Below, piece after piece: positions 5,301 through 62,915 of a DNA stretch of 64,000 nucleotides (positions within the stretch are counted from its first letter, which is position 1; each line of letters starts with the position of its first letter). Where the stretch lies: positions 65,534,001 through 65,598,000 of the forward strand of contig CM097888.1 in assembly GCA_044892525.1 (NCBI GenBank), written 5' to 3'. This DNA is from Schmidtea polychroa (Eukaryota). Position numbers and translations under genes: made by a program. The notes under the pieces are model-generated. The model searched no databases, was not told the DNA's origin, and saw only the letters and a list, made by a program, of their open reading frames with translations.

Positions 5301-8300
5301 TTTAAAAAGATATAAAAGGAAGGTTTTATTAATTAAGGAAATTGAAAAACTGAATACCGCAAACAAAAACAAATTTGTTTTCATGGAACCTGGTAGATGA
5401 AAAATGTAGCAACTGTGAAACAAATGTAGTAGTGAAAAATAAAATGATTATTTTTATTGCTTTTACATGGGTTTTTCACAAATCTTAACTGAATTCGCTG
5501 GGCACTCAGAATACTGATAAATGATGATGGGAAGTGTATAATTAACTAACTAGGAGAACGAATCAAAAACAAAGTGACAGGAATTGAATTTTGGAAAAGT
5601 GAGTTGACGAAAATTTAAAGGATCAGATTATGTTAATGAAATTGTTGACCGATAAAATTAAGAGTTGATAAAGAAATTGAATTTATTTGAGAATAAAATA
5701 GAAAAATAAAATCATGAAGCCAACACTATGGAAACATTAAATTAAATTATGCCGAAAATTTTTTAACCGGAAATAATAGTAAAATGTTTTTAAATATATT
5801 TGAGTTTAACTTAAAGTCTTATTCTACATGTTTTTCAATAATGTTTTAATAATTCTGTGAAATTTTGACCAAAACAGTGAATATTCCACTTGTATTTTAA
5901 CTGTTGAATATTTTAACTTTCAAAACAAGAGATATTTGTTACTTGTGTAAGAAAAGAGTTATAGATAAGGTCAGGGAATAAATTGGTGTTGCATATAAAA
6001 GATATAATATTTTGGGGAAAATCAATAAATTTATAACCGCTGTGTTTCATAATTTGAAGGGGATATAATATTCATCATATTCTCAAGTATGGCTTTAATC
6101 GATTTCCTGATTGGAGTTTAAGTTGTATTCCACTTACTAGTGAAAATATTTTATTATTTAATATATGCGCTGGCTGAACTTCAATAAGACTTATTGGCTC
6201 TGCAGTACTAGTTAGGTAAAACAGTCAAAATATTAAATGTCTTACACATCACAAAATCGGAATCTAATAGAATTACAATGGCATCGAAGAGAATATTTCC
6301 ATATAATTACATCACAAACCGAGTTTTGGAAAAAACTACAAATTTGCCACCACTCTGGAAAGATATTACAGAAAACGAATATAGAAAGACTCAGAAAATG
6401 TAACAAGATACTGGATGTGAAAATTTGATGGATTATCAGTTAATATATTTAAAATTAGATGCAGGGGCGTAGCCAAAAATTCCTGAGGGGGGTGCCCAAA
6501 AAAAATTTTTTTTGAACCACAAAAACTGTTAAAATTTTAACATTTATTTCAAAAATTTTAGCTTTTACATAATCCATACATTTATTTTGATTCTACGGGC
6601 AGATTTTGACATTTCAATCAAAACTTCTTCGATCTCAATTGACTCATCTCTATAAATATTTAATAAAACTAATCCATTTAATCGATCCTCATTCATAGTA
6701 GCACGGTCAAAAGTTTTGATTAAATTTAATTTGCTAAAGCTTCTTTCAAGCGTACAATTTGTAACCGGAAGGGCTACTAGTATCAAAAGCAACTTTAAAA
6801 CGTTTGGAAAAAATTTACTATTACAAGACTTGATATGATCGATTATTGAATTCGGTTTTTCAACAAGGTTTGATAATCTTAAATTCCATATTTTAATTTC
6901 TGCCCTTAATTGAGTTGCTGAAGCATGCAAGTAGTCACCATAAAAGTCCAAAATATCATCAACAGCTTTCGCAATTTCTTCTTCAACAATAATGTTGTGG
7001 TTAGTAATTATTCGAAATCCTGTCAAAATTTCTTTATGCTTTTGAAATCTTTCCTCAAGTTCGCTGCAGAAATTATTAATAAGCGGTTTGAATAAAATAT
7101 TTTGATAATATTCTTTTGTGCTTAAAATAACCATAAGTGGTCTACCACAAAATCTCGATTTTCGAATATCAATTTCATATTTTTCAGCAATTTTTGTTGC
7201 ATTTGAATATATCGCATCAAACTTGTTTGATAAATCTCCCTCAATTTCCTTGAATGTGTCAATAATATCATATGATACTTCTATAGCTTGTGTTATGTCG
7301 ATCGAAACTGATTGTAAATATCTGCTAAGTCCTACAGTGATGCTCAGTGTATAGTCAAGTGACAATAAAGACATTATAAATTCTAATGTAAGAATCGTAT
7401 TTAAGAATCCAATTGCTAAATGTGAAGGATCATCATTCCATTCAACAATGATCTGTAAGCCAGACACAACTCCATCGAAAAGTTCAGTGAAAGTTGCAGT
7501 TGTTTGATGGCGTTCTATAAATCACGTAGGACATATATTTTTTAACTTCTTTTTGTGCTTTCTGGAGATTTTTCTGCAATGCTTTCTAAAAGAACTTGCT
7601 GACACTTTGGTGTATTAAAAAGTTGAAAATTTGCTTAATTGTCTCAGTACAGCTTTTAAGTAAGACAATATAGCACGAATGTGTCAATGCCAAATTAAAA
7701 CAGTGACTCATGCAATGAATGTAGATAGCACTTGGAAAACTATTTCTAATTCTTCTTGCAACGCCTGATTTCTCTGCTGCCATAACAGCCGCTCCATCAT
7801 ATCTCTGACTGGCACAGAAGCTTAAATCTACATAAAGTTTTTAAAGTTTCATTATCTCTGATGATATTCCATCGGCGGTTTTATCGATTATTGGAACAAA
7901 TTTTAAAAAGTCTTCATTGATTTCAAGCTTATCGAAATCGAAGTAACGCACTCCAATAGCCAACTGTTCTTTGTTAGCTCTATACGAAGTTTCATCAGCG
8001 TAAATTTAGAAAAATGAAGACTTTTTAATTTAGCTATTCGACGTTTGATAATAATTTTTTCAATTATTGAGATGATTTCGTTTTAAATCGTAGGACTCAG
8101 ATAATTTGCATTTTTTGGAGCATTTTGTGCTAGTTCGTTAAATTCCTTATCCGAATGTGCTCACCATTGAAGGAGGGCTCGTAAATTTCCATCATTTACA
8201 CTGTTATCTCTTGAAAGTAATGAGCCTGAATCATATTTTTCACGCAACGAAATGTTTTGACGACCACATAAAATAATAGATTCTATGATTGGATATAACA

Positions 8301-11300
8301 ATAAGTGATTCTTCTGCTTTTCCAAATTCAATTCTTTTTTAATTATCATATTAATTGGTTGAGTTTTTCCTTCCGATATAGAGCTTAGAGATGTCACAAT
8401 AACTAAGTTTTCAGATGAGAAGCAATGCTTTGATGATGTGTAAAATTTTCTGAACTTTTATGCCAATTTTTGAAACCCACCGAAACCAAATTTCGATCTT
8501 GCTCGCGTTCAAAAAAGTAGCAAAATTTACAAAAACCACTATCTCTAGATTTTGAATAAGCCAACCATGGAAAAGTTTTAAACCAAGTCCACTGAAATTT
8601 TTGGTTCTTTCCGTGTATAGTTGTCTGTGGATAGTTGTATCAATAATCCGGATTTTCGATCATATTGATTGCATTAATCTTTTCATCATCGCTCAGTGAT
8701 GTAACATTTTGATAAAATCTAATGTCACCTGATAGTACATTACTTGATCGATTCGATGTCTCATAAGTTGACGGTAGACTTTGAGTTGTATCTCCAGTTT
8801 CTGCTTGAATAGGTTTTTCTGATTTTGGCTCATTCGCGACGTAACTATTGTCATTATTATTGTACTCATCAATTCCATCCGCTGTCTTTATTTCTCTTTT
8901 TTCTTTATTTCTCTTCATTTTATTTCTAGAATATATTAAGTTATTCTTTACATGAACGTTTAAAAATGATTTGATTCGATTTACTTACCTTAATTAATGA
9001 TCAATTCAATTAAATCAATTTAATTGGTTGAATTTATATTTTAAAAAATTTATAAACAATATGTTTAATTCAAAAAGATTAAAACCGTTAAAACTTGTAT
9101 TAAATATCAATCAAGAGGGGGGTGGCCAGGCATCTAAGGACCCCCTGGCTACGCCCCTGATTAAATGTCTTTCTCTTGACTGATTTCTTCCAGCAGTTTC
9201 TATTCAAGTCCTTATCTTATAACCGATTAGAATTGCCTAAAATTAATGAAATTCTTGATATGTCATAGCCATCAATCCTTTAGATGAACCCATTGATTTA
9301 TTACAAAAAATTGAGATGTTCAACTTCTATGAAGGAGGAATTCGAGGGGGTTTGAAATTTGTAAATAAGCACTATGTTAAATCAAATGAGCGTACAGAGT
9401 CATTATACAATGACATCAATAACCTATATGATTGGGCTTTAAGTCACATCTTATCATGTGAAAATAATAGTTGGATTAAAAATTCTTTTATATGGTTATA
9501 CTGTGGAAGTTGACCTAGAAATCCTAAAATCTATTCATAATTTCTAGGATGATTTACCTGTTGCCAAGACCAGATTTGGCTAACTGGTGCCCTGAGGCCA
9601 AAATAACTGTAATTTTTCTAAAAACAATATTACTTAGAGTTTCAAATGAGATTTTTTTTTTCAAATTTCCGATTTTTTTAAAAATTTTTCGTATACAGAA
9701 AACCAGTATCTTTTTTCTTTTTTGCCCCATTTTGCTTGGTGCCCTGAGGCGATGACCTCAGTTGGCCTAATAGTATATCCAGCCCTGTCTGTAGCCACAA
9801 ATAAAATGTCTTCTCCCGAGTCTTAAGTAAAAATATTAATGTTGACATACTATCCACAGAAGAATTATGTAATTCATTGGAAATTACTTCAAAAGTTTAT
9901 GTTATTAGGTGTAAGAGTATTCAATATATTAGAGCCGTTAAATTTAAACAGGCTGCTATTTTCAGGAATTATATTGATTCTAACAAAAAGCTAAGAGCAG
10001 ACTCAAATAATACCTCTTTTAGTCGCTGCCTTATGACATAAAAATCATATTTGTTTGAATAGATCAAATCATATTGATTAATCAATTTTGGATTTATCGA
10101 AACTTCTGATTTATCTTTTACAATATCAGGAATTAGCTAAATATCGGTCAAAATTTAATTGTTGCCAGAGATAGTGATTCCTTCTTTATGGATATGTAAA
10201 AATATCAGATTGGATACATTAATACCAGCAAAAGTTAATATATCGAATTATCTTACAGATTATTCACTCTTTTCAAGGCAATGGAATCCAGTTATCGGGA
10301 AATTCATGGATGAAAGTAAAGTAAAGGGATGCGAAGAACATATCCTTTTACAGCCAGAATTTTAATGTCTGTGAGTAACAAAGAACCGATGAAGGCTATG
10401 GAAATAACAATGAAGAGTACTGATATAAAACATTAATTGTAACTAGATTGTTACGAAAAATAAAATGTTTACAGTACCACAATATCGAATTGGTAATAAA
10501 AACCATCAGTAATTTATTTCAAGGAGTCAAAAGTTACTTTTACAAAAGTAGATGATAAGAGCAACTTGATTGTAAAAAATTAAATGCATGCATATGGACT
10601 CTTGCGATAACAAAATGAAAACAATCTACGAAAAAGATAATTTGTGATAACAATTAATTTTTACAAATTGGATTTTATGAGAAATTTATTTATGGTTATA
10701 TTAACAAAAATTTTATTATTTTAATTTTATTAATAACTAAAAGTCACTGGTTCAATAAATTTATATTTTCACTTCTAATTTGTTTAATCATGAAGTAGAA
10801 TAATTTACCAAATTCCATAAATGAAATGATGAAAAGTTTAATTGAAAATTATTTTACACACATAACATAGTAAAATGATATTCTAGTAGTTGAACTAATA
10901 TTTAATTCAGGATGTTTTAGAAAGTCATCCGGGCTTGACATTTTTGCTCTCTGCCCGAGATTTTCACTCTCGATACATTGCTACAGTTGTATATAGAATA
11001 TTTTTCGGTATCAATTCATCATGGTCGGGTAAAATCACTTTGCAAGAATTGGAAAAATCCGATATATTATTAGTATTGGAATCATTAGAAACAACAGACG
11101 ATATCAACACAATTACACAGTATTTCTCATATGAACATTTCTACGTTATTTATTGCAAATTCTGGGAATTGGACGAAGATCACGATTTGGTCATTAGTAA
11201 GGCAGATTTAGCTCGGCATAACAATTATGGTATTTTTTTAAATATAAATAAATTTAAATGTCATTATAAAACAAAAATTTTGAATTTGTTTTCAGAATTC

Positions 11301-14300
11301 ATCAAAAAATTTTTTATTTATTTTAAAATATATAAATAACTATAATTTTAATGTTCACAAAATAAAGAAAACGATTTTTTTATTAAGTCCTTAAACAAGT
11401 TTGTAACCTATTTGTTTATTTAGTAATACAGAATTCATTTAGGAGATTTTTTTAAGAAATTTTTTTAACAATACGAAATGTAATTTATAATGACGTTAGT
11501 GAGATATATAACTTCGTGATTCAATGCTTCTTCACCTTATCAGAGTTTGACACAAAATTCTCACTGTATGAAATAAAATAAAACTCTTCCTTTATACATA
11601 TGGTGCAAATCATGTTAATTAGACCTGGCTTTAATTGTGTTTTTTCAACAAATGCTTGTGGTTTTTATTTCTTAAATAGTTCCAAGGCCCAAAATAAGTT
11701 GTCGATATAATACTTGCTAAATCTTTAATGACTTTGGTTGTTTAAACTTTGCTAACTTTAAAAAAATTGAAATTTTAAGTTACCTAAAAGACATAGGATT
11801 AAAAACCGCCCATGAATTGATAGATATGTAGACTCGATTCAAGGTCGAAAGCCCCGTTTTCTGCGATACTCCCTTATAAAATTTGGTTTTTATTGATGTT
11901 TTCGTAATATTAAAAAAGTTTATGCAAACCTCCAAATTTTTTTTATTTTCAAGTTTGGTTTTAATCGATGATTACTTTTAACGCCTTTATACTTGAAAAT
12001 TAATTTCCTGTTTTAATGAAGTGATTAAGCCCATACCATTTTGACAACATACATACGCGAATCATAACCTTTGTTTGTGTTACACATGGTTTTTTTGTGT
12101 AATATAAATACAGAGGTTATGAATTACTATTAAAATAAAAAAATTATAAAGCATTTCATTTAAACAAATAAAATGAAAATATTAATTACTTCACTAAAAG
12201 AAAATATTGGAAAAAATACCCTACCCTGTCTGGAAATAAATTCCTTTTGGCCCCAAAGTCGTGATTATCTGGGATTTATGATTTGGCACATTGCTCATTC
12301 CTACTTCCATAAATGACGTCTCTTAATTTTAGCCCATTTTTGACACCTTCTCGTCACATCGTCACAAAAAGTTATTCTCCCCAAATATTATATGATAAAG
12401 ATTTGTATCCACTTCAACATATTCTCAATTTGGAAATTATCGTAATTATTAACTGCTTGTCACTGCGGTATTTATTTTTTAATATGGAGATGTTACTGAC
12501 AATAAGTTTAAAATGAATATTATAATTTGAGGGAGGTCTTGGGAAGCTGAAATTATTATAAAATTCTTTTTAAAATATTCTTTATCTAGACTAAAATGCG
12601 GATGTTCAGAATGTTATTATTTAAATTCTCTTCTAATTATTAATTAACGTATTTATTACTATAATAAACTTGAAATTGTATTGTAGAACAACAATAAAAC
12701 GAAGGCTCCTGGCGTGGTCGCCAATGTTATGATTTGACATAATGAGATAACAAAATTCAAAAATCTATTTTATAACAAGTTTTAATATTTTAATAAAAAT
12801 TAATATTTTGTTAAATGGTTTTGTGTGATTAATGCTTTTCTAATCACAACAGGTATAATTATATTAAATAATCATTATGCAATAATGTATATGCAATAAA
12901 GTGAAAAGTCGTAGTAATAATATTACATTGTTCTTTCAAAATTATGTACACAAAATTTTGTTTTTAATAGATTTAACAATTTGCTCAATTTTGGATTGTT
13001 TTAATCAACAGGCAACTAAACTAAATTGGATTATATGAAATGACATTTTGAAAATACCGTATGTTCCTAGAATAGGGATTCTAAAGCTTTTTCCTACTGG
13101 AACCCACTGTTCAAAGTGGAAACCTTTAGCAACCCACACTTTGAGAAACTTTGTTCTAGACAGTCCTAGACGACTCGCATAATACTAAAAAATAAATATT
13201 TTCAAAAAATTATATATTTTTCTGATTCAAATTTTATTTGTTTATTCAGCCATCATATTTTTTTATGTCGAATTTTATATTTAAAAATAATTTAATCAAA
13301 CTTACTAAATATTTTGTACTTATTAACATGTTTTAATTTAGAAGTCATTTTAAATTTATATCGAAAATTGTATTTTATTAATTTTAAAATGTTAATCTAA
13401 CTCCAATCATTTGTATAATTTTATTCTTTGTAGCTGTCTCCGAACGAATGGTTGAAAGAATATTCAGTGGAGCTGTGACGAAGTAAAATAGATTGTCTAT
13501 ATTTTATTTAAATTAGTAAACACTTCAGAAGTCGCGCTCGAACAGAGGGCCTTATGACATACACGGAATTTGTATGGTTTTTGTTATCAGAAGAAGATAA
13601 AAAACACCCTCGAAGGTATTTATTGAAGTTTGTCAAAGTATTTGATTTTCATGTATTATCATTGCAATTTAACATGTTCATAAATCTTTAAATAATTTTA
13701 AACTTTCATTTTATATATTAGAGGTTTTACAATGTTTTCCCTGAGATATCCTCAGTTCATTGTCAACATATATTAATGTAATCTAATCAGTGGTGCTACA
13801 ACGCAATTTGGCACCAGGATCAATAGCCAAAACCTTATTTTCGAAGTTATTGGTCAATTGTAAAAATATTATTTTTTATGACCGCGTAATTCGAAGGATT
13901 GGTGTATAAGAAAAAAATCAATAATATTATATTTCAAACATACAAACTCACTTTGATATTCTCATAAATAGAGAAATGAGATACGCTATACACTATAGAA
14001 ATCGAAAAGTGGTAGAAAAATTAAATACTGCACATAAACACAACACATACTAAAAAATACATGCAAACTTTCGATATATAGAAACTTGCCGTTGAGATAC
14101 GTTTCTATAATAACTTTATTTCAGACAATTTTGAGGGGGAAAATCGTTGAAAATTGTTTTAAATCTTTTTATAAAGAAACTACTTTAAGTTGTCATGAAA
14201 ATAATGAAATATTATTTATTTTTAAGTTAATTATTCTTTAGAATTTCAGTTCTTTCTATCATAACTTTCTTTAATTAATTAAAATTTAAAATTTATCTAA

Positions 14301-17300
14301 CTTACATTAAATTGAAATAATTCCAAAATAAATTTCAAGCATAAAATCCTTTAAAAACTGAAAAAGTAATTAAAAATAAATTATAATAGAAATTTTGACT
14401 AAAAATAATATTTAGGAACTTGAAAAATGATCTCATAATTATATAAAATCAAACTTCAAGCCTTTAAATTTATTTAAAATTAAAAACTTACTTGAATGCC
14501 ATTTCTAAAATGGCTAAAATAAATTGAATAAAATTCATTTTTGCATATGAGAGTCACTAATAATTGGTGTACACATCACATCAACCACCATTATAGAAAC
14601 CGCATCTCAGTGGTTTCTGGTGAAATATAGATAGTTCACCGGTTTGCACTGAATAAACGCGTCTATAATGTAAAAATAAAATCAATACGTGTATATTATA
14701 TAAACATACAAACTTACCTGTGTTTTGATTTTTAGCGTTGCAATGAATAAACTCATTTAATATAGAAAGTGGTAGAAAAAATAAACTGACACACAAAATC
14801 ACAATACATAGTACAAAATGCATGCAAATTTTCGATATGTAGAATCGTTGTAATGAATAAATCATTTACATTTTTCTACTTACATTTTTAGAAATAAATG
14901 ACAGATAAAATTTTGACAAAAATTCCGAAAACTCAATTTCGAGTTGTATAGATAATAAAGACATTATTTCGTAAGATTTATCTTCAATTTTTAATAAATT
15001 TAATATTAGTTTTTTTAATAGAACATGACAAAATTCGACTAATTACTTTATTTATTTATAGTTAAAAATATATCTGACTTACATATCGAAATAATTCCAA
15101 ATAACTTCATAAAATTTCATAAAAATCCTAATAACCTTGAAATTTAATTATAATTTATAATAAAATTGTTGATAAAAAGTAATATTTAAGAGCTTGAATA
15201 ATGATCTCATATCTCATAATGATTACATTGAATACATTCCATCACAAATTATGACGAATCTATAATATGGGTTGTACGCACCAACCCATATTATAGATGC
15301 GTTTATTCAGTGCAAACGGGTGTAAAAGCATAACTTTTACAAAATCGTTAGCAAAATCGATTATAGATAAAAATTATTTTTTGAGCTGTTAATATTTTTG
15401 AGAATTTTAAAGGGTTCCATTATTAATAAAATTAATCAGCATCGATTGATATACAAATGAATAGAGTCGAACTAGTTGAAGAAACCTTTGAAGATTTTAA
15501 ATATTTTTAAAAAGGCAGTAATTTTTTAAAACATTTAATATAAAAATGTTGTCAAGCTTTCTAACGTCACACTACTGTTATTCAATACATATTCACAAAC
15601 GCATTAGTGTAGCATATAGTTAGAAACAAGAGAAATTTAAATGAAAAAGGATATTAGCACAGTGACTATATTTAACACATTTGAAAATGAATACGTATAA
15701 TTTTCTGCTTTCGTTTATTTACTACTTAAAAAAACATTCTTCACTAAAGCTGCGATAGCTTGTTGTTTCATGGTTGATTATTGCAATCAAAAAGTCCAAA
15801 TAATTTGAATACGTACTTTATTAATCACACAAAAGAATATAATAACATATTATGTTAAAATTACCGCATCGTAATATGTTTCACTATGAAGTGTTGATTC
15901 CAGTGATGCATAACGATCTCGAAGTTCAATAATATTACGCAATATTGTAAAACTCATTATAACTATTATGTTCGTAAATCTAGTAACAAACTTTATTTTC
16001 ATAATATTTATTTACTTTTGATATTTCAGCTTTAATATCATTTACCGTAAAATGAAGATTCAAACTCCGGAATATTTAAATAACTTAATTTTGAAATGCA
16101 ACTCGACTGTTTAACAAAACAAGTTTATTTTAAATTTATCAAAATTAAATTTCATTAATTAATTTTTATATAATGTAGACCATTTTTTTATCATGTGAAT
16201 TTAATTGTTTTCTATGGTAACCCGACAAAAGCGTGCAGGACTAATTAAAAAACTTTTAGAAGATTTTTGAGGATTTTATTAAGAATCGACCAATGCCCTT
16301 ACGACCAGTACCCATAGTGGGACAAAACATCCTGTCGGATAAACTCAGACTATATAATAATTTCTATCTTTGCGCGCTTTTGTTACGGCGCCATTTTCTA
16401 TATATAGTTTATTTAATTATTGCTGTCCCTTTGAAAATTAATTAAAAATTTGAAATCATTCTCCAAGTTATTTAATCCATGAAAGCCATGGAGCTCAAAT
16501 TTTCAACAGTTATAACATAATTTCTTATCGGTTTCAGCAATTTAAAAAATAATATTTTTATGAAGCTATCAATTTACATGATTATAATTAGAAAATTATT
16601 TAGTGCAAATTATGTTATTTTTTGTCATTTTATGTCTAGTATTGAATATTGGTTTCGTTGCATGGATTTGGACGGAGATGGAATTTTATCACTTTATGAA
16701 TTGGATTATTTTTACCAAGAGCAGTTATTCCGAATGGAAGAAATGGGAATTGAACCAATTAGTTTCGAAGATTGTATATGTCAAATGATGGACATGATTA
16801 AACCAAAAGAAGAAAATAAAATCCGTTTATCAGATCTTAAAAATTGTCGATTAGTATCGATATTTTTTGATACATTTTTTAATTTGACCAAATACCTTGA
16901 ACATGAACAACGAGATCCATTTACAAATTTAAAAGTATAACCTAAAGTTTCGTAAAAATCTGATTTAGTATGATGATCTTAGGATTTAGAAGAAGGTCTT
17001 AACGAAATGTCTGATTGGGATCGATATGCATCCGAAGCATATGAAATCTTAGTAGCAGAAGATGGTTCACAGGATAATTATAATGATAAGTAAGCTTATA
17101 ATAAATATACAAAATCGAGTTCAAATATAATTTTGAACTGTGTTAAAATAAATTAAATTCAAAATGTAATATTCAATAAATTTTTGAAAGATTTTCGCCT
17201 TTTTATGATTTCATTATGGAAATTATTGAAATTTGATCTTATCAACAAACAAAATATTTATAAAATAATTAATTGTATATATCAATGATTTAAATAACGA

Positions 17301-20300: not shown

Positions 20301-21898
20301 CCTACATATATGATGCAATATTTTTATTTTGAGCATAAACCACACACGTCTACAAACATGGAAACTTTATTAGTGTATAATTTTTTTGCTCCTAATAATA
20401 CACATTTTCTTCAATAAATTATTTTAATAAATAGTTTTTATACAGTTACGATTTAAGATCACGCTGAGAAATATGAAGTTACTTAAATGCACCTCATTCA
20501 CCTATACTCTGCTAAACCTCACATCGAGATGCCTCTTTGACTTTTCGTGGTAAAGAATCGATATTCTATTTTTATGTTCAAATGTTAAATTTTTAAATCT
20601 ATATGTTTACAAAGTATTGTCTGTTTCGGCCTTCCTCAAATTCCAAAAATCCCATAATATAATAAAAATAGAAAATGAGTTTATCAGCAAAATGAATAAA
20701 ATTTTAATATGAATGCCAATTCTTTTGCTACGTGAAAATTTTTAATTATAAAATAATCCTTTTAATCAATCCATTTAAGAACTTAAGTGGAAAAATGTTT
20801 TCTTTTTTAAAATTTACTGCTTTCATATTGGTTGTAATTTTGAATAAATAAAATGAAATTTAAAATTCTTGAAAAATTATTTTAAAACCGGAATTCAATA
20901 TTTCAATTTCTATTCCCTGACATTCTGCAATTTAATTAATTTTTTAAAAAGTCACCAATAAATATATCCAACTATATTTTCAAAATCTTGAAAATTGAAA
21001 GATTGTAAATTTTCCTTTTTTATAAGAAATCAAATATACCAACAGAGTCAACAATGAGTTTGATGTCAATGTCTTCTTCCCTATTTTTGATTGTTCGTTT
21101 ATGAATAGAATATATTTATAAATCGGAGATTTTTTTGAATGTTAAAGGCTAAAATTTTTATTGATAATATTTCCCCTTCCCTAGCTCATTGTTGAACATT
21201 TTCCAGAATCATCCAAATATCTAACTCCTTCGTACAAATTCATGGGGCGATTACAATTTACATTCGTTTGTAAGCGGCTCACATCATGCTGTAGACAATA
21301 TATTTGTAAAAGTATATCTTCAGTGACTGTAAATTTCACGTCATGTAAATGTCGTGTAAATATAATAAATTTTAAATTTAAGTTCATTTTAAAATGTCCT
21401 GATTTCAGAAAATATATTCCATCCTATTTTATTTTAATTTAACAGTTAGCCCACATTTTGCATTTTTTATTATCTGGTAACCCAAACTACCAATGACATC
21501 AATAATGGGTTAAACAAGAAATTTGTATTTTAGAAATTTTTTAAGTAAATTTAATCAATATCCAGTTATATTTTAATTAAATACTTTATTCCATGCAATA
21601 GAAAACTATTATTTGAATTATTCTGTAAAATTGTAATTAAAAATATTGCCAATTTGTCCTTTATAAATTACAAATATTTTGAAATGGTACCAATTAAAAC
21701 TCCAAAAAATAGTCGCATGATCTGTCCAATCATATGCAAAGTAACATTTTTTCAGAATCAAATAATACTATTAAACAAAACTAAAAATTGTAAATTTATC
21801 ATAGATTAGTTTTTCACAAAAAGTAAAATTGAGCAATTTCATGATCAGCAACACCGATTTATAAAAGCGAGGGAAAAAATATTCAGTAAAAATTAATC

Positions 21899-23347
21899 CT
21901 AAATATCTGTATAAATCAAACGAACAATTTTTTCCATACTATCAAAATTTAAAGAAATAATCCGATAATCATCAAATTGAACCGTTTCGAATGAGTATTT
22001 GATTCCGAACGGTAAATCTTTATCGGCAATTTTGATAATGTTCGACTTGGACAGCTGGATTTGAGTGTTGAAATTGAACAGCACGTAATGCCGATTTCGT
22101 CGTCGTTGCTGTTGACTTTCACTACTATTGACAAATACATTTCTAATCACCAATGGACAATGAAAAACGGTTTCATGGCAGCAATCGGTTTTCAATTTCA
22201 ATTTTATCAACTCTTCGAATTCAACAAACACGGCACCATTGTCATGAGATTTCTCTTCGGTGATCGATAACAACACTATTTGCGGCTCTATAGATTTAAT
22301 CGATTTAGCATAATAGACAAAATCCAACAACGTTAACGAATTCATTAAATATGAATCGATTAAAAACTTCCACTCGTTGTTTTCCAAAATAAAATACGCT
22401 TCACGAAAATAATGGATAATTCTGTCAAGGCTCAATTTGTTGATGTTTCGAGCGCAATTCTGTTGAGGCATTGCTGGCGTTAAAATCGTCACAATTCCGT
22501 TTTTGCGAGTGAGAAAATTCGGACTCCGTTTAACAATTTCTCGAACATTATCAACAAATTTCTCATTGCCAATATTGATGGTTTGAGTTGACCAATTCAA
22601 TTCAGCGTAATAGCGAAAGAAAGCATAAAGATATCCAATCACAGTTGACGATTCCTGTTGACATTTATGAAATATGCTAGCTAACATTATTGCTAAAGAT
22701 GTTCCATTTAAAAATTTTGATGTCGATTTGTAATATATTAATTTAAATATTGCCCACTTTTTTAAATGGAATAAAGTTTCTTGATAAATAGAGAATAAAT
22801 CGCCCAAATAATCACGTATTAATAAACTATTTCTAAGGCTATTTAATGCTAAAATCGATTTTAAATCCATTTGTTCGAGTAAATTCTCAGACGGATTTCT
22901 CAAATCAAAAATTGGTTTCTTAGCCATGCAATATTGAGATGGAAGAAAACAGAGGAGGAAATCAAATGAATTATTTGATATTACCAATTCTAATACAGGA
23001 ATTAATCTGGTGGATAAGTTTGCTATAACTTGGAAATTTCCCGTTTTATTAAGAAAAGGAACTAGTGATTCATACACTTTATTAAGTTTAATAATACCTG
23101 GAAGGCATAATACAAAATCTTTAGGATTGTCAGGATATGATTTATGATATGTTATTGAACCAACAGGAAATAAATAAAAATACATGTTTTCTGAGTTTAA
23201 TTCAATTTCTTTTAAAAACCCTTTCATCCATTCAAAGATTTTATTTACTGTATAACTTAAGGCAGCAGTACCATTTTCGTTGGGTTGAAAATATTCTTCT
23301 TGTTCAACTATACATAAATTATCTACATGATCCATCTGAGAGTCCAT
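21899..23347 (-). CDS. Divergent canonical poly(A) polymerase-like protein (482 aa), first catalytic Asp substituted
   Basis: Uninterrupted ORF. Collinear PAP motifs: FPVGS...PKDFVL (vs FTFGS...DIDAL), SFDFLL (vs EIDIL), LALNSLR (vs RSLNGCR), LKKWA..IY, FLNGTSLAIMLA, ILTPAMPQQNC (vs IITPAYPQQNS). Confidence 0.85.
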   Translation of the reverse strand: MDSQMDHVDNLCIVEQEEYFQPNENGTAALSYTVNKIFEWMKGFLKEIELNSENMYFYLFPVGSITYHKSYPDNPKDFVLCLPGIIKLNKVYESLVPFLNKTGNFQVIANLSTRLIPVLELVISNNSFDFLLCFLPSQYCMAKKPIFDLRNPSENLLEQMDLKSILALNSLRNSLLIRDYLGDLFSIYQETLFHLKKWAIFKLIYYKSTSKFLNGTSLAIMLASIFHKCQQESSTVIGYLYAFFRYYAELNWSTQTINIGNEKFVDNVREIVKRSPNFLTRKNGIVTILTPAMPQQNCARNINKLSLDRIIHYFREAYFILENNEWKFLIDSYLMNSLTLLDFVYYAKSIKSIEPQIVLLSITEEKSHDNGAVFVEFEELIKLKLKTDCCHETVFHCPLVIRNVFVNSSESQQQRRRNRHYVLFNFNTQIQLSKSNIIKIADKDLPFGIKYSFETVQFDDYRIISLNFDSMEKIVRLIYTDI

Positions 23348-25269
23348 TACACGAATAAATATCTATTTCAGAAATAATAGAAAATAAATGAAAATGTAAA
23401 ATCTTTCGTTTAAAATTATTAATATGCGTAAATTATAAAGAATCTTAATGATTAATTCAAATTATTTTAAAAAATATATAAGTAAAATTTTGAAAGGAAC
23501 ATATAAGTTAAACAAAGTAATTAGTTGTTGATTAATATAAAAATTGGAAAGAAATTTCAAACATATTAAAATTAAGTACAAATAATGATCGAAGACAACA
23601 TTGGCGTGAGCTTATTAATACCAAAGCTAATTTATAGAAATTAAACTAAATTTTTTTTGAATTATTTTATATGGAGTCAAATCGATCTAACATTCACATA
23701 ATTGAATAATTTCTTAAAATTACACAAAACTAAATATGAAAAGTGTAAATTCTTTTACAAATTAACAATGTTAAGAGCATTTGGAATGTAACTGGAAATT
23801 GAACCCATAAAATGATGTGTGTAGAAATTGGTTGAGAATTGATATTACTGGTGGGTTACGAGTAGGCAAACTTTCGCTTTTTGAAACTGATTTAACACTC
23901 TCTTTCACTCTATTCGCGTCATCCTGGCAACCACGTATATTAATTTTATTTGACCACTAAACGCCCGTCACAAGCGACGTTGGTACTGCACTTTAGTCAG
24001 TGACTGTCGTCAAAAGGTGACCTCTACAACTAGAACTAATAATGATCCGACGAATCGCTGGGTTCATAGGCTACCGTAGAAGATCTCGTGCCTTGTTTTA
24101 CATAGTCCATTTATCATTTCCCTACGTACTCCATCTCTTATTAGTCGCCATATACTCCGAATCTTTAAAATAAAGACCTTCGCTTAAACAGTTGTTGAAA
24201 GATCAAACAAAATTTTCAAGATAATAAAATTTGAATTCCCTGAGATTAGGTTGAAAAAATTAAGTAATAATTGTTTATTTCATGTGGCGAAGTGTTTTAC
24301 AAACATTATTATGTCCCTAAAGTCAATTAAATTTTCTTCTTCGATTTAATGTGTTCCTATCTTATGGGTTACTTGGTTTACTATTTAAAATTCGTTTACT
24401 TCACACTTAACCCGACATATAAAGAACTCTAATGACCAATCAATTCGTCACAAGTGGAGATTTCGGCAAGAAACGAAGTTTCGGGGTTGGCCTACCTGCT
24501 TCACTTGCACTCCTCTTTCCAGATCAGCAGGGGTTAGATCCGACTAAGCCCGGGTATATTTCCGTATGTTGTACATGGATATTTTACAAAACCAAAGGAA
24601 AAGAAATTAATTATAATTGCATATAAATATTATTAACAGTGAAATTGATTTATGGAAAACAAGCGTTACATTTGCGAAAAGATATCTAGTTCCTCAGAAA
24701 AAAATTCAAATTTAAATTTTAACAAAAAAATTTCAATGGGTTCCTGATTGAGATATCATATTATATAATTATATTAAAACCAACTATTCGTTGTTTATCC
24801 ATACTATTCATATAAAAAGACGAAACCTTAAAACATATTCCTAGATAATTTATTAAATTTATGACATGATTAAACATAGGATTATCATAAGAATTTATAG
24901 ACACACTCTTCACTGAAATAGTATTGGTTTTCAAATTAAAGTAAAGAGTATATAATGTACAAAAATTAACATTTTCTATTTAAGCATCGCTATTTCCACC
25001 CGTCTGCATGGAATAATAACATCTATAATACAGTATATGTGAAAACCAATAGATACATCGTGCCCCCAAGAAATAGTGAGATTCGTATAGAAATAAATAA
25101 ATAAATGCAAATTCATATGTATGGTTCATTTCTCAAAATAATTTTCATTTGAATTATTTATATTTTTAACCAGCGTCTAATCAGGATTTTGAAGAAATTA
25201 GAAATCCTAAAATCCTAAAATCCGTCACTTTATCTTTCAAATTGTTAGAGCCAAATCCGGAGAAGATGG

Positions 25270-26117: not shown

Positions 26118-62915
<36,798 letters not shown>

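Follow-up and report, generated by a model that had tools for sequence, protein, structure and literature searches.

Introduction

Canonical poly(A) polymerases (PAPs), represented by bovine PAP-alpha (1f5a/1q78), human PAP-gamma (4lt6), yeast Pap1 (2q66) and S. pombe Pla1 (7q73), are nucleotidyltransferases, enzymes that act by a two-metal mechanism relying on a conserved Asp triad (PMC6232586; PMC6309179). In mouse and human, a testis-specific cytoplasmic paralogue, PAPOLB/TPAP, is present in addition, and is listed as an intronless gene (PMC6309179). PAPOLB is near PAP-alpha in sequence. It has retained all three Asp residues of the triad and cannot fulfil its function without adenylation activity (PMC5177979). 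In the mouse protein, the substitution D114A reduces polyadenylation in vitro to background and leaves the knockout without rescue; D114, as specified by the mutagenic primer, is the first Asp of the motif G-A-D-I-D (PMC5177979). The present analysis concerns a PAP paralogue (hereafter the candidate) encoded on the minus strand of a 64,000-nt stretch of the planarian Schmidtea polychroa genome (GenBank assembly GCA_044892525.1, contig CM097888.1, positions 65,534,001 to 65,598,000 of the forward strand), which is referred to in its full length as the window. This protein has Pro in place of the first catalytic Asp, and it is rather probably a PAP-derived pseudoenzyme, or a near-dead enzyme, kept for a binding role in RNA 3'-end metabolism.

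Several pseudoenzymes that have the nucleotidyltransferase fold act as regulators: the N-terminal nucleotidyltransferase (NTr)-like domains of TUT4/TUT7, NF45-NF90 (DZF) and MiD51. The candidate is comparable to them as a putative pseudoenzyme of this fold. However, these proteins come from non-canonical or other nucleotidyltransferase branches and align over the first ~340 residues only, whereas the candidate is of canonical three-domain PAP origin and keeps two of the carboxylates. Like PAPOLB, it is an additional gene of canonical PAP descent that has no introns and is maintained by selection, but it is extremely diverged. From the canonical PAPs listed above it differs in the first Asp, replaced by Pro or Ser, in the rebuilt YSN..GFLGG loop, and in the absence of matches to the PAP_NTPase and PAP_RNA-bind models.

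A canonical-PAP paralogue of similar length, CAD5111542.1 (P0009, 474 aa), is encoded by the annelid Dimorphilus gyrociliatus. It carries Lys at the first Asp and has lost the third Asp. In contrast to the candidate, P0009 gives strong matches to PAP_central (148 bits) and PAP_NTPase (80 bits); it shares 22% identity with the candidate and is placed apart from it in the phylogenetic tree. P0009 is an independent case of triad loss in another phylum and a candidate PAP pseudoenzyme, so that degenerate canonical PAPs are not unique to the planarian lineage. Our literature search found no account of a conserved full-length three-domain derivative of a canonical nuclear PAP with a broken triad, which is weak evidence of absence because the early phrase queries probably missed the term "poly(A)"; nothing specific was found on planarian PAP paralogues.

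PAP homology and domain layout

The homology of the candidate to PAPs, as assessed by profile and sequence comparisons, is real but weak. Pfam PAP_central matches residues 188-323 with 30.2 bits, above the cut-off of 27.1, and PAP_NTPase gives 13 bits, below its cut-off of 27. Similar PAP_central values were obtained for the two relatives of the candidate described below, with 30.5 bits for P0001 and 24.4 bits, under the cut-off, for P0002. The ordinary PAPs of the same genome score 134-178 bits with PAP_NTPase, 175-191 bits with PAP_central and 38-53 bits with PAP_RNA-bind. A phmmer search against PDB sequences recovered bovine PAP (E 2.5e-7) and S. pombe Pla1 (E 7e-7), and human PAP-gamma was also matched. 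Identity of the candidate to ordinary PAPs is 17-27%, and its best paralogue in the genome is an intronless PAP on piece C3 (L008; 27% identity, E 9e-14).

The full-length AlphaFold model superposes on whole three-domain PAPs, with the alignment extending to residue ~469. The boundaries of the nucleotidyltransferase (palm), central and C-terminal domains are listed in Table 1.

Active site

Residue columns were scored in a MAFFT alignment of 60 sequences, comprising the three members of the candidate's family (the candidate, P0001 and P0002) and 57 other PAPs. Positions conserved in at least 80% of these 57 sequences, 45 in number, were regarded as canonical-invariant.

The HMMER alignment of the candidate with Pla1 places P-K-D opposite D-I-D. 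Together with the 60-sequence alignment, this upholds the assignment in an earlier note, made from the DNA letters, of Pro to the first metal-binding Asp. The same note had listed the GS motif, the second and third Asp and TPAMPQQN as retained, and these are indeed present as G63-S64, D77, D129 and T290, P291, P294 and N297, the latter four being canonical-invariant positions. The candidate also keeps K196 and Y205, which are aligned to bovine K228 and Y237. The site of the first Asp is occupied by Pro, Pro and Ser in the three family members, and that of the third carboxylate by Asp, Asp and Glu; a complete triad of metal-binding carboxylates is therefore absent from the family, its first position being lost. 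The P-K-D motif thus persists in the relatives in part: K76, located at the hydrophobic middle residue of the canonical D-h-D, and D77 are invariant, and the first residue is variable.

The degeneration goes beyond the loss of the first Asp, and the earlier note understated it. Among the 45 canonical-invariant positions, 21 are kept in all three members, 20 are replaced in all three, and four are mixed. Apart from the first triad Asp, the losses are concentrated in the pocket loop after Y205. There, the canonical S206, N207, G210 and G214 are substituted in every member of the family, while the new residues K207, S210 and N214 are family-invariant.

The candidate is thus a homologue of an enzyme family that lacks a residue shown to be essential. 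In view of the PAPOLB D114A precedent, which concerns the very residue that is lost, the candidate most likely has no ordinary poly(A) polymerase activity, as suggested by its sequence and by this analogy.

C-terminal domain

The C-terminal third of the candidate had been described as bearing no recognisable resemblance to the PAP RNA-binding domain, and this holds by three approaches. Pfam gave no match to this domain; among outside matches to the three-sequence family profile, none aligned beyond about residue 364; and hhalign of the C-terminal domain against 34 canonical PAP RNA-binding domains returned a probability of 0.1, that is, no similarity. The Atlas feature score for a PAP RNA-binding domain in the candidate is 0.85, a low value. 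Given the hhalign result, homology of this domain to the PAP RNA-binding domain is unproven.

The domain is conserved within the family, with 45% identity and a proportion of nonsynonymous differences (pN) of 0.375 between the candidate and P0002, and it is closed in all three members by an invariant I-Y-T-D-I. In the full-length model, the C-terminal elements are the strands E356-364, E394-401, E416-424 and E449-456 and the helix H372-388, with a predicted local distance difference test score (pLDDT) of about 65-79. Residues 356-456 are thus modelled as beta-alpha-beta-beta-(alpha)-beta, an arrangement resembling the RNA recognition motif (RRM) and expected of a PAP RNA-binding domain. The C-terminal part is best regarded as a conserved, family-specific domain that occupies the position of the RNA-binding domain and, according to the model, probably has its fold.

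Unlike the ordinary PAPs of this genome, the candidate has no K/R-rich tail. The absence of this tail makes a non-nuclear location of the protein possible, as far as its sequence indicates.

Orthologues and selection

A word-indexed search revealed two relatives of the candidate: P0001 (481 aa, 90% identical, present in UniParc only) and P0002 (474 aa, 49% identical, encoded by a 2285-nt Logan contig). An exhaustive hidden Markov model search with the three-sequence profile against 1.84 billion cluster representatives found P0002 with 909 bits, followed by ordinary PAPs with at most 83 bits. A search for further family members seeded with P0002 recovered P0002 itself only. In the 3' flank of this 49% orthologue (L019:1680-2050), about five copies of the palindromic sequence ...ctactgacaat(t)tgtcagtag... 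occur with a spacing of 60-130 nt.

Comparison of the coding sequences (CDS) of the candidate and P0002 yielded a pN of 0.32 and a proportion of synonymous differences (pS) of 0.79, which is saturated. All domains are under constraint: amino acid identity amounts to 45-56% for the three main ones, compared with 31% for the first 49 residues. Another view of selection is provided by contigs of public sequencing runs: run X1 differs from the window at three positions within the candidate open reading frame (ORF), and all three differences (in codons G43, K327 and V404) are synonymous. The intact orthologues, the relation of pN to pS and the synonymous-only strain differences demonstrate that the candidate is under long-term purifying selection and is not a decaying copy, in agreement with the earlier suggestion that this ORF is selected. 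Both purifying selection and expression, which characterise a maintained pseudoenzyme, are thus indicated, with the expression part resting on contigs of runs X1 and X2, whose library type is guessed.

In its own genome the candidate is single-copy, except for one decayed fragment found by the genome search. This fragment, located on another chromosome (C1:99614585-99614761), covers 60 residues with 49% identity to residues 292-351 of the candidate and is interrupted by two stops, TGA and TAA. It probably represents what is left of a second gene of the diverged family.

Open reading frame and transcript

The uninterrupted ORF of 482 codons reported previously was confirmed, and its location on the minus strand was added. 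In the ORF listing it is the only one of at least 80 aa within 21-24.5 kb of the window. The G+C content of this region is ~28%, so stop codons are frequent, and a run of 482 open codons would arise at this composition with a probability of ~5e-18. Upstream of the ATG, the frame remains open for just five further codons.

Contigs of four public sequencing runs were compared with positions 20400-24900 of the window. Run X1 (study P1) yielded essentially a single 1568-nt contig, collinear with 21905-23472 and free of joints; the depth of this run is zero between 20853 and 21607 and again from 23571 upwards. The 125-nt 5' untranslated region (UTR) on this transcript contig contains no ATG upstream of the ORF. 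Run X2 contributed a 306-nt contig across 21731-22035. Run X4 (study P3) resembles genomic DNA, with depth in 30 of 30 bins and a 3011-nt contig over 20994-23985 that shows zero differences from the window. X1 and X4 belong to different studies, X1 being eight years older. The pattern of the X1 and X2 contigs probably represents an unspliced mRNA made up of the 5' UTR, the ORF and the 3' UTR, with a minimum length of about 1.74 kb.

PAP genes of the genome and origin of the candidate

The genome searched comprises 781 Mb in 1012 contigs, with the window located on piece C4. Ordinary PAPs were found elsewhere in the genome in the form of at least eight intronless genes with intact motifs and two exon-split loci. 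Seven of the intronless genes (L001-L007; 518-549 aa) are arranged in two clusters, C1:156.289-156.339 Mb and C2:126.881-126.949 Mb, and are 96.5-99% identical at the DNA level. The G-S/D-I-D motif is intact in all of them, their tails are K/R-rich, and the near-identity reaches past the ORFs. It seems that a PAP gene with an intact catalytic site was amplified here by recent segmental duplication. A separate intronless PAP of 508 aa with an intact triad is encoded at C3:39033389-39033829 (L008/L012), and P0003, from another sequence source, is its close relative.

Exon-split conventional PAP loci are only two in number, and one of them (L009) carries an intact F-G-S...D-I-D-A-L. Just downstream of the conventional PAP exon of this locus (L009:2879-3286), there is a perfect tandem repeat with a 27-nt unit, which reads HSNQILTTS in one frame.

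The earlier note had proposed that the candidate is a retro-duplicated PAP. Its status as a PAP paralogue stands, but retro-duplication is not shown, since its closest paralogues lack introns as well. A single ORF also makes up at least eight other PAP genes with intact motifs (508-549 aa), so the lack of introns does not by itself point to retroposition of the candidate, and the intronless state may have been inherited through ordinary DNA duplication from an already intronless parent. No long A-run was detected within 400 nt past the candidate stop, although scars of retroposition would be erased at such divergence.

In the maximum-likelihood tree, the ordinary PAPs of the genome form a clade with P0003, P0025 and a cestode PAP (Rodentolepis nana), supported by a value of 97 in the Shimodaira-Hasegawa-like approximate likelihood ratio test (SH-aLRT). 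The candidate family is placed on a stem of ~3.2 substitutions per site, beside the Giardia muris PAP (P0028). This sister relationship to P0028 was flagged as a long-branch join and rejected as an artefact. When the family was constrained into the PAP clade of its own lineage, the log-likelihood was 9.2 units better than that of the free tree, with a p-value of 0.64 in the approximately unbiased test. These results are compatible with, and mildly favour, an origin in which a gene of the flatworm PAP expansion was duplicated and the copy then diverged very rapidly.

Functional interpretation

We consider it fairly probable, from sequence comparison, that the candidate is a pseudoenzyme of PAP descent, or an almost inactive enzyme, that persists because of a binding role in RNA 3'-end metabolism. 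It derives from a canonical three-domain PAP by very fast evolution in which the overall architecture was kept. With the first triad Asp lost and the nucleotide-pocket loop remodelled, poly(A) polymerisation would no longer proceed at a useful rate. The C-terminal domain and the remodelled pocket would engage RNA 3' ends, nucleotide or partner proteins, and through such binding the candidate would regulate RNA 3'-end metabolism or serve in it as an adaptor. The adaptor or regulator role, any binding function and the loss of catalysis are what we infer.

Several observations weigh against this interpretation. A set of pocket residues survives (G63, S64, D77, D/E129, K196, Y205, N169, R172, T290, P291, P294 and N297), which is the pattern to be expected of continued selection for nucleotide binding or residual catalysis. 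The family-invariant D73, two residues ahead of Pro75 on the same stretch, is a possible ligand of the metal site. The family is known from three sequences, and its conservation statistics are thin. Concerning the C-terminal domain, the alignment used to fold the RRM-like model included canonical PAPs, and the C-terminal 143 residues folded alone from the three family sequences gave a pLDDT of 32.7, which is uninformative. Finally, the assignment of runs X1-X3 to RNA libraries, on which transcription of the candidate depends, is only a guess.

The surviving pocket could alternatively belong to an active nucleotidyltransferase with a rebuilt site, in which D77 and D/E129 would act together with D73 or with a water- or lysine-assisted arrangement, metal or nucleotide preference being possibly changed or processivity low. 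This alternative is unlikely but has to be taken seriously. The GS turn, the two carboxylates, the K228/Y237 equivalents, N169/R172 and TPxxPxxN are invariant despite an overall identity of 49%, but 20 of the 45 canonical-invariant positions are gone. The third carboxylate is limited to Asp or Glu, whereas the first-Asp site, with Pro, Pro and Ser, is conserved as no metal ligand, and replacement of the same Asp abolishes the activity of PAPOLB (PMC5177979). The invariance of the replacement residues K76, K207, S210 and N214 suggests a newly constrained pocket and makes decay unlikely. Of the 57 canonical PAPs, 18 combine the full triad with an acidic residue at the position of D73, which is therefore not a specific compensation for the lost Asp.

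A narrower form of this alternative, in which a live nucleotidyltransferase uses the two carboxylates plus K76/K207, or D73, instead of the Asp triad, and might differ in nucleotide, metal or substrate preference, appears distinctly improbable. If true, a site based on K76/K207 or on D73 would be a catalytic configuration undescribed for canonical PAPs.

The view that the candidate is a non-functional relic, either a pseudogene of recent origin or an ORF that exists by chance and has yet to be interrupted, is close to refuted and very improbable. The very weak Pfam scores, the loss of many family-invariant residues and the decayed fragment of a second copy elsewhere in the genome would agree with it, but the frame is intact in three sequences despite the stem of ~3.2 substitutions per site, and the pN of 0.32 against saturated pS, the 5e-18 chance of the ORF, the synonymous-only strain differences and the transcript-like contig all contradict it. 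That the Pro75 codon CCT (23123-23125) is an assembly or sequencing error in an ordinary PAP, an objection raised in the earlier note itself, is hardly conceivable and found no support, given that contigs X1 and X4 of two studies agree there without a differing letter, that the site is again Pro in the 90% orthologue and Ser in the one with 49% identity, and that the remaining protein is just 17-27% identical to ordinary PAPs.

Genomic neighbourhood and feature coordinates

The two neighbouring genes are both multi-exon, as had been recognised from the sequence. A dynein heavy-chain gene on the minus strand extends with many exons over 26118-53351 and encodes the domains DHC_N2, AAA_8, MT stalk, AAA_9, D6, AAA_lid_11 and Dynein_C. 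Its last exon (26118-26381) completes Dynein_C and lies about 2.6 kb upstream of the candidate transcript on the same strand. On the other side, an EF-hand gene on the plus strand, with exons 10935-11339 and 16560-16940 (EF-hand_13, 57.8 bits, plus weak EF-hand pair matches), converges on the 3' end of the candidate. The minus-strand interval 6565-7467 contains an ORF of 300 aa that includes a hAT-family C-terminal dimerisation domain and probably represents the remains of a transposase. The features of the candidate gene are given in Table 1.

Table 1. Features of the candidate PAP paralogue, in positions of the window
Feature	Position	Strand	Basis
CDS of the candidate PAP paralogue	21899..23347	minus	482 codons + stop, intronless, uninterrupted ORF; joint-free collinear contig; orthologues of 481 and 474 aa
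Nucleotidyltransferase (palm) domain, residues ~50-150, with degenerate metal-binding triad	22898..23200	minus	HMMER alignments to bovine PAP and Pla1; model strands E58-62, E76-83, E105-111, E118-123, E126-135
PAP central domain, residues ~151-345, including K196, Y205 and TPAMPQQN	22313..22897	minus	PAP_central match; alignments
C-terminal domain, residues ~346-482, family-specific sequence, predicted RRM-like	21902..22312	minus	Orthologue comparison; model
Minimum 5' UTR	23348..23472	minus	X1 contig extends to 23472; X1 depth absent in bins from 23571 on
Minimum 3' UTR (168 nt)	21731..21898	minus	X2 contig over 21731-22035; minimum only
G63-S64 codons, hG[GS] motif, kept	23156..23161	minus	G invariant; S in 56/57 other PAPs; both invariant in the family
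Pro75 codon CCT at the first catalytic Asp (bovine D113, mouse PAPOLB D114)	23123..23125	minus	Column Asp in 55/57 other PAPs (96%)
D77 codon, second triad Asp, kept	23117..23119	minus	D77 column invariant
D129 codon, third triad carboxylate	22961..22963	minus	Asp in 55/57 other PAPs; Glu in the 49% orthologue
Rebuilt pocket loop, residues 205-215	22703..22735	minus	Canonical Y-S-N-x-x-G-[FY]-L-G-G replaced by Y-Y-K-S-T-S-K-F-L-N-G

Significance

The significance of the candidate is moderate, as the gene is lineage-restricted and its inactivity is predicted from sequence. In planarians, RNAi and in situ hybridisation are routine, which makes the function of the candidate directly testable. The unusual expansion of intronless PAPs with intact motifs beside a degenerate one in the same genome offers a natural comparison of active and degenerate forms, and raises the question of whether the degenerate copy modulates the others.

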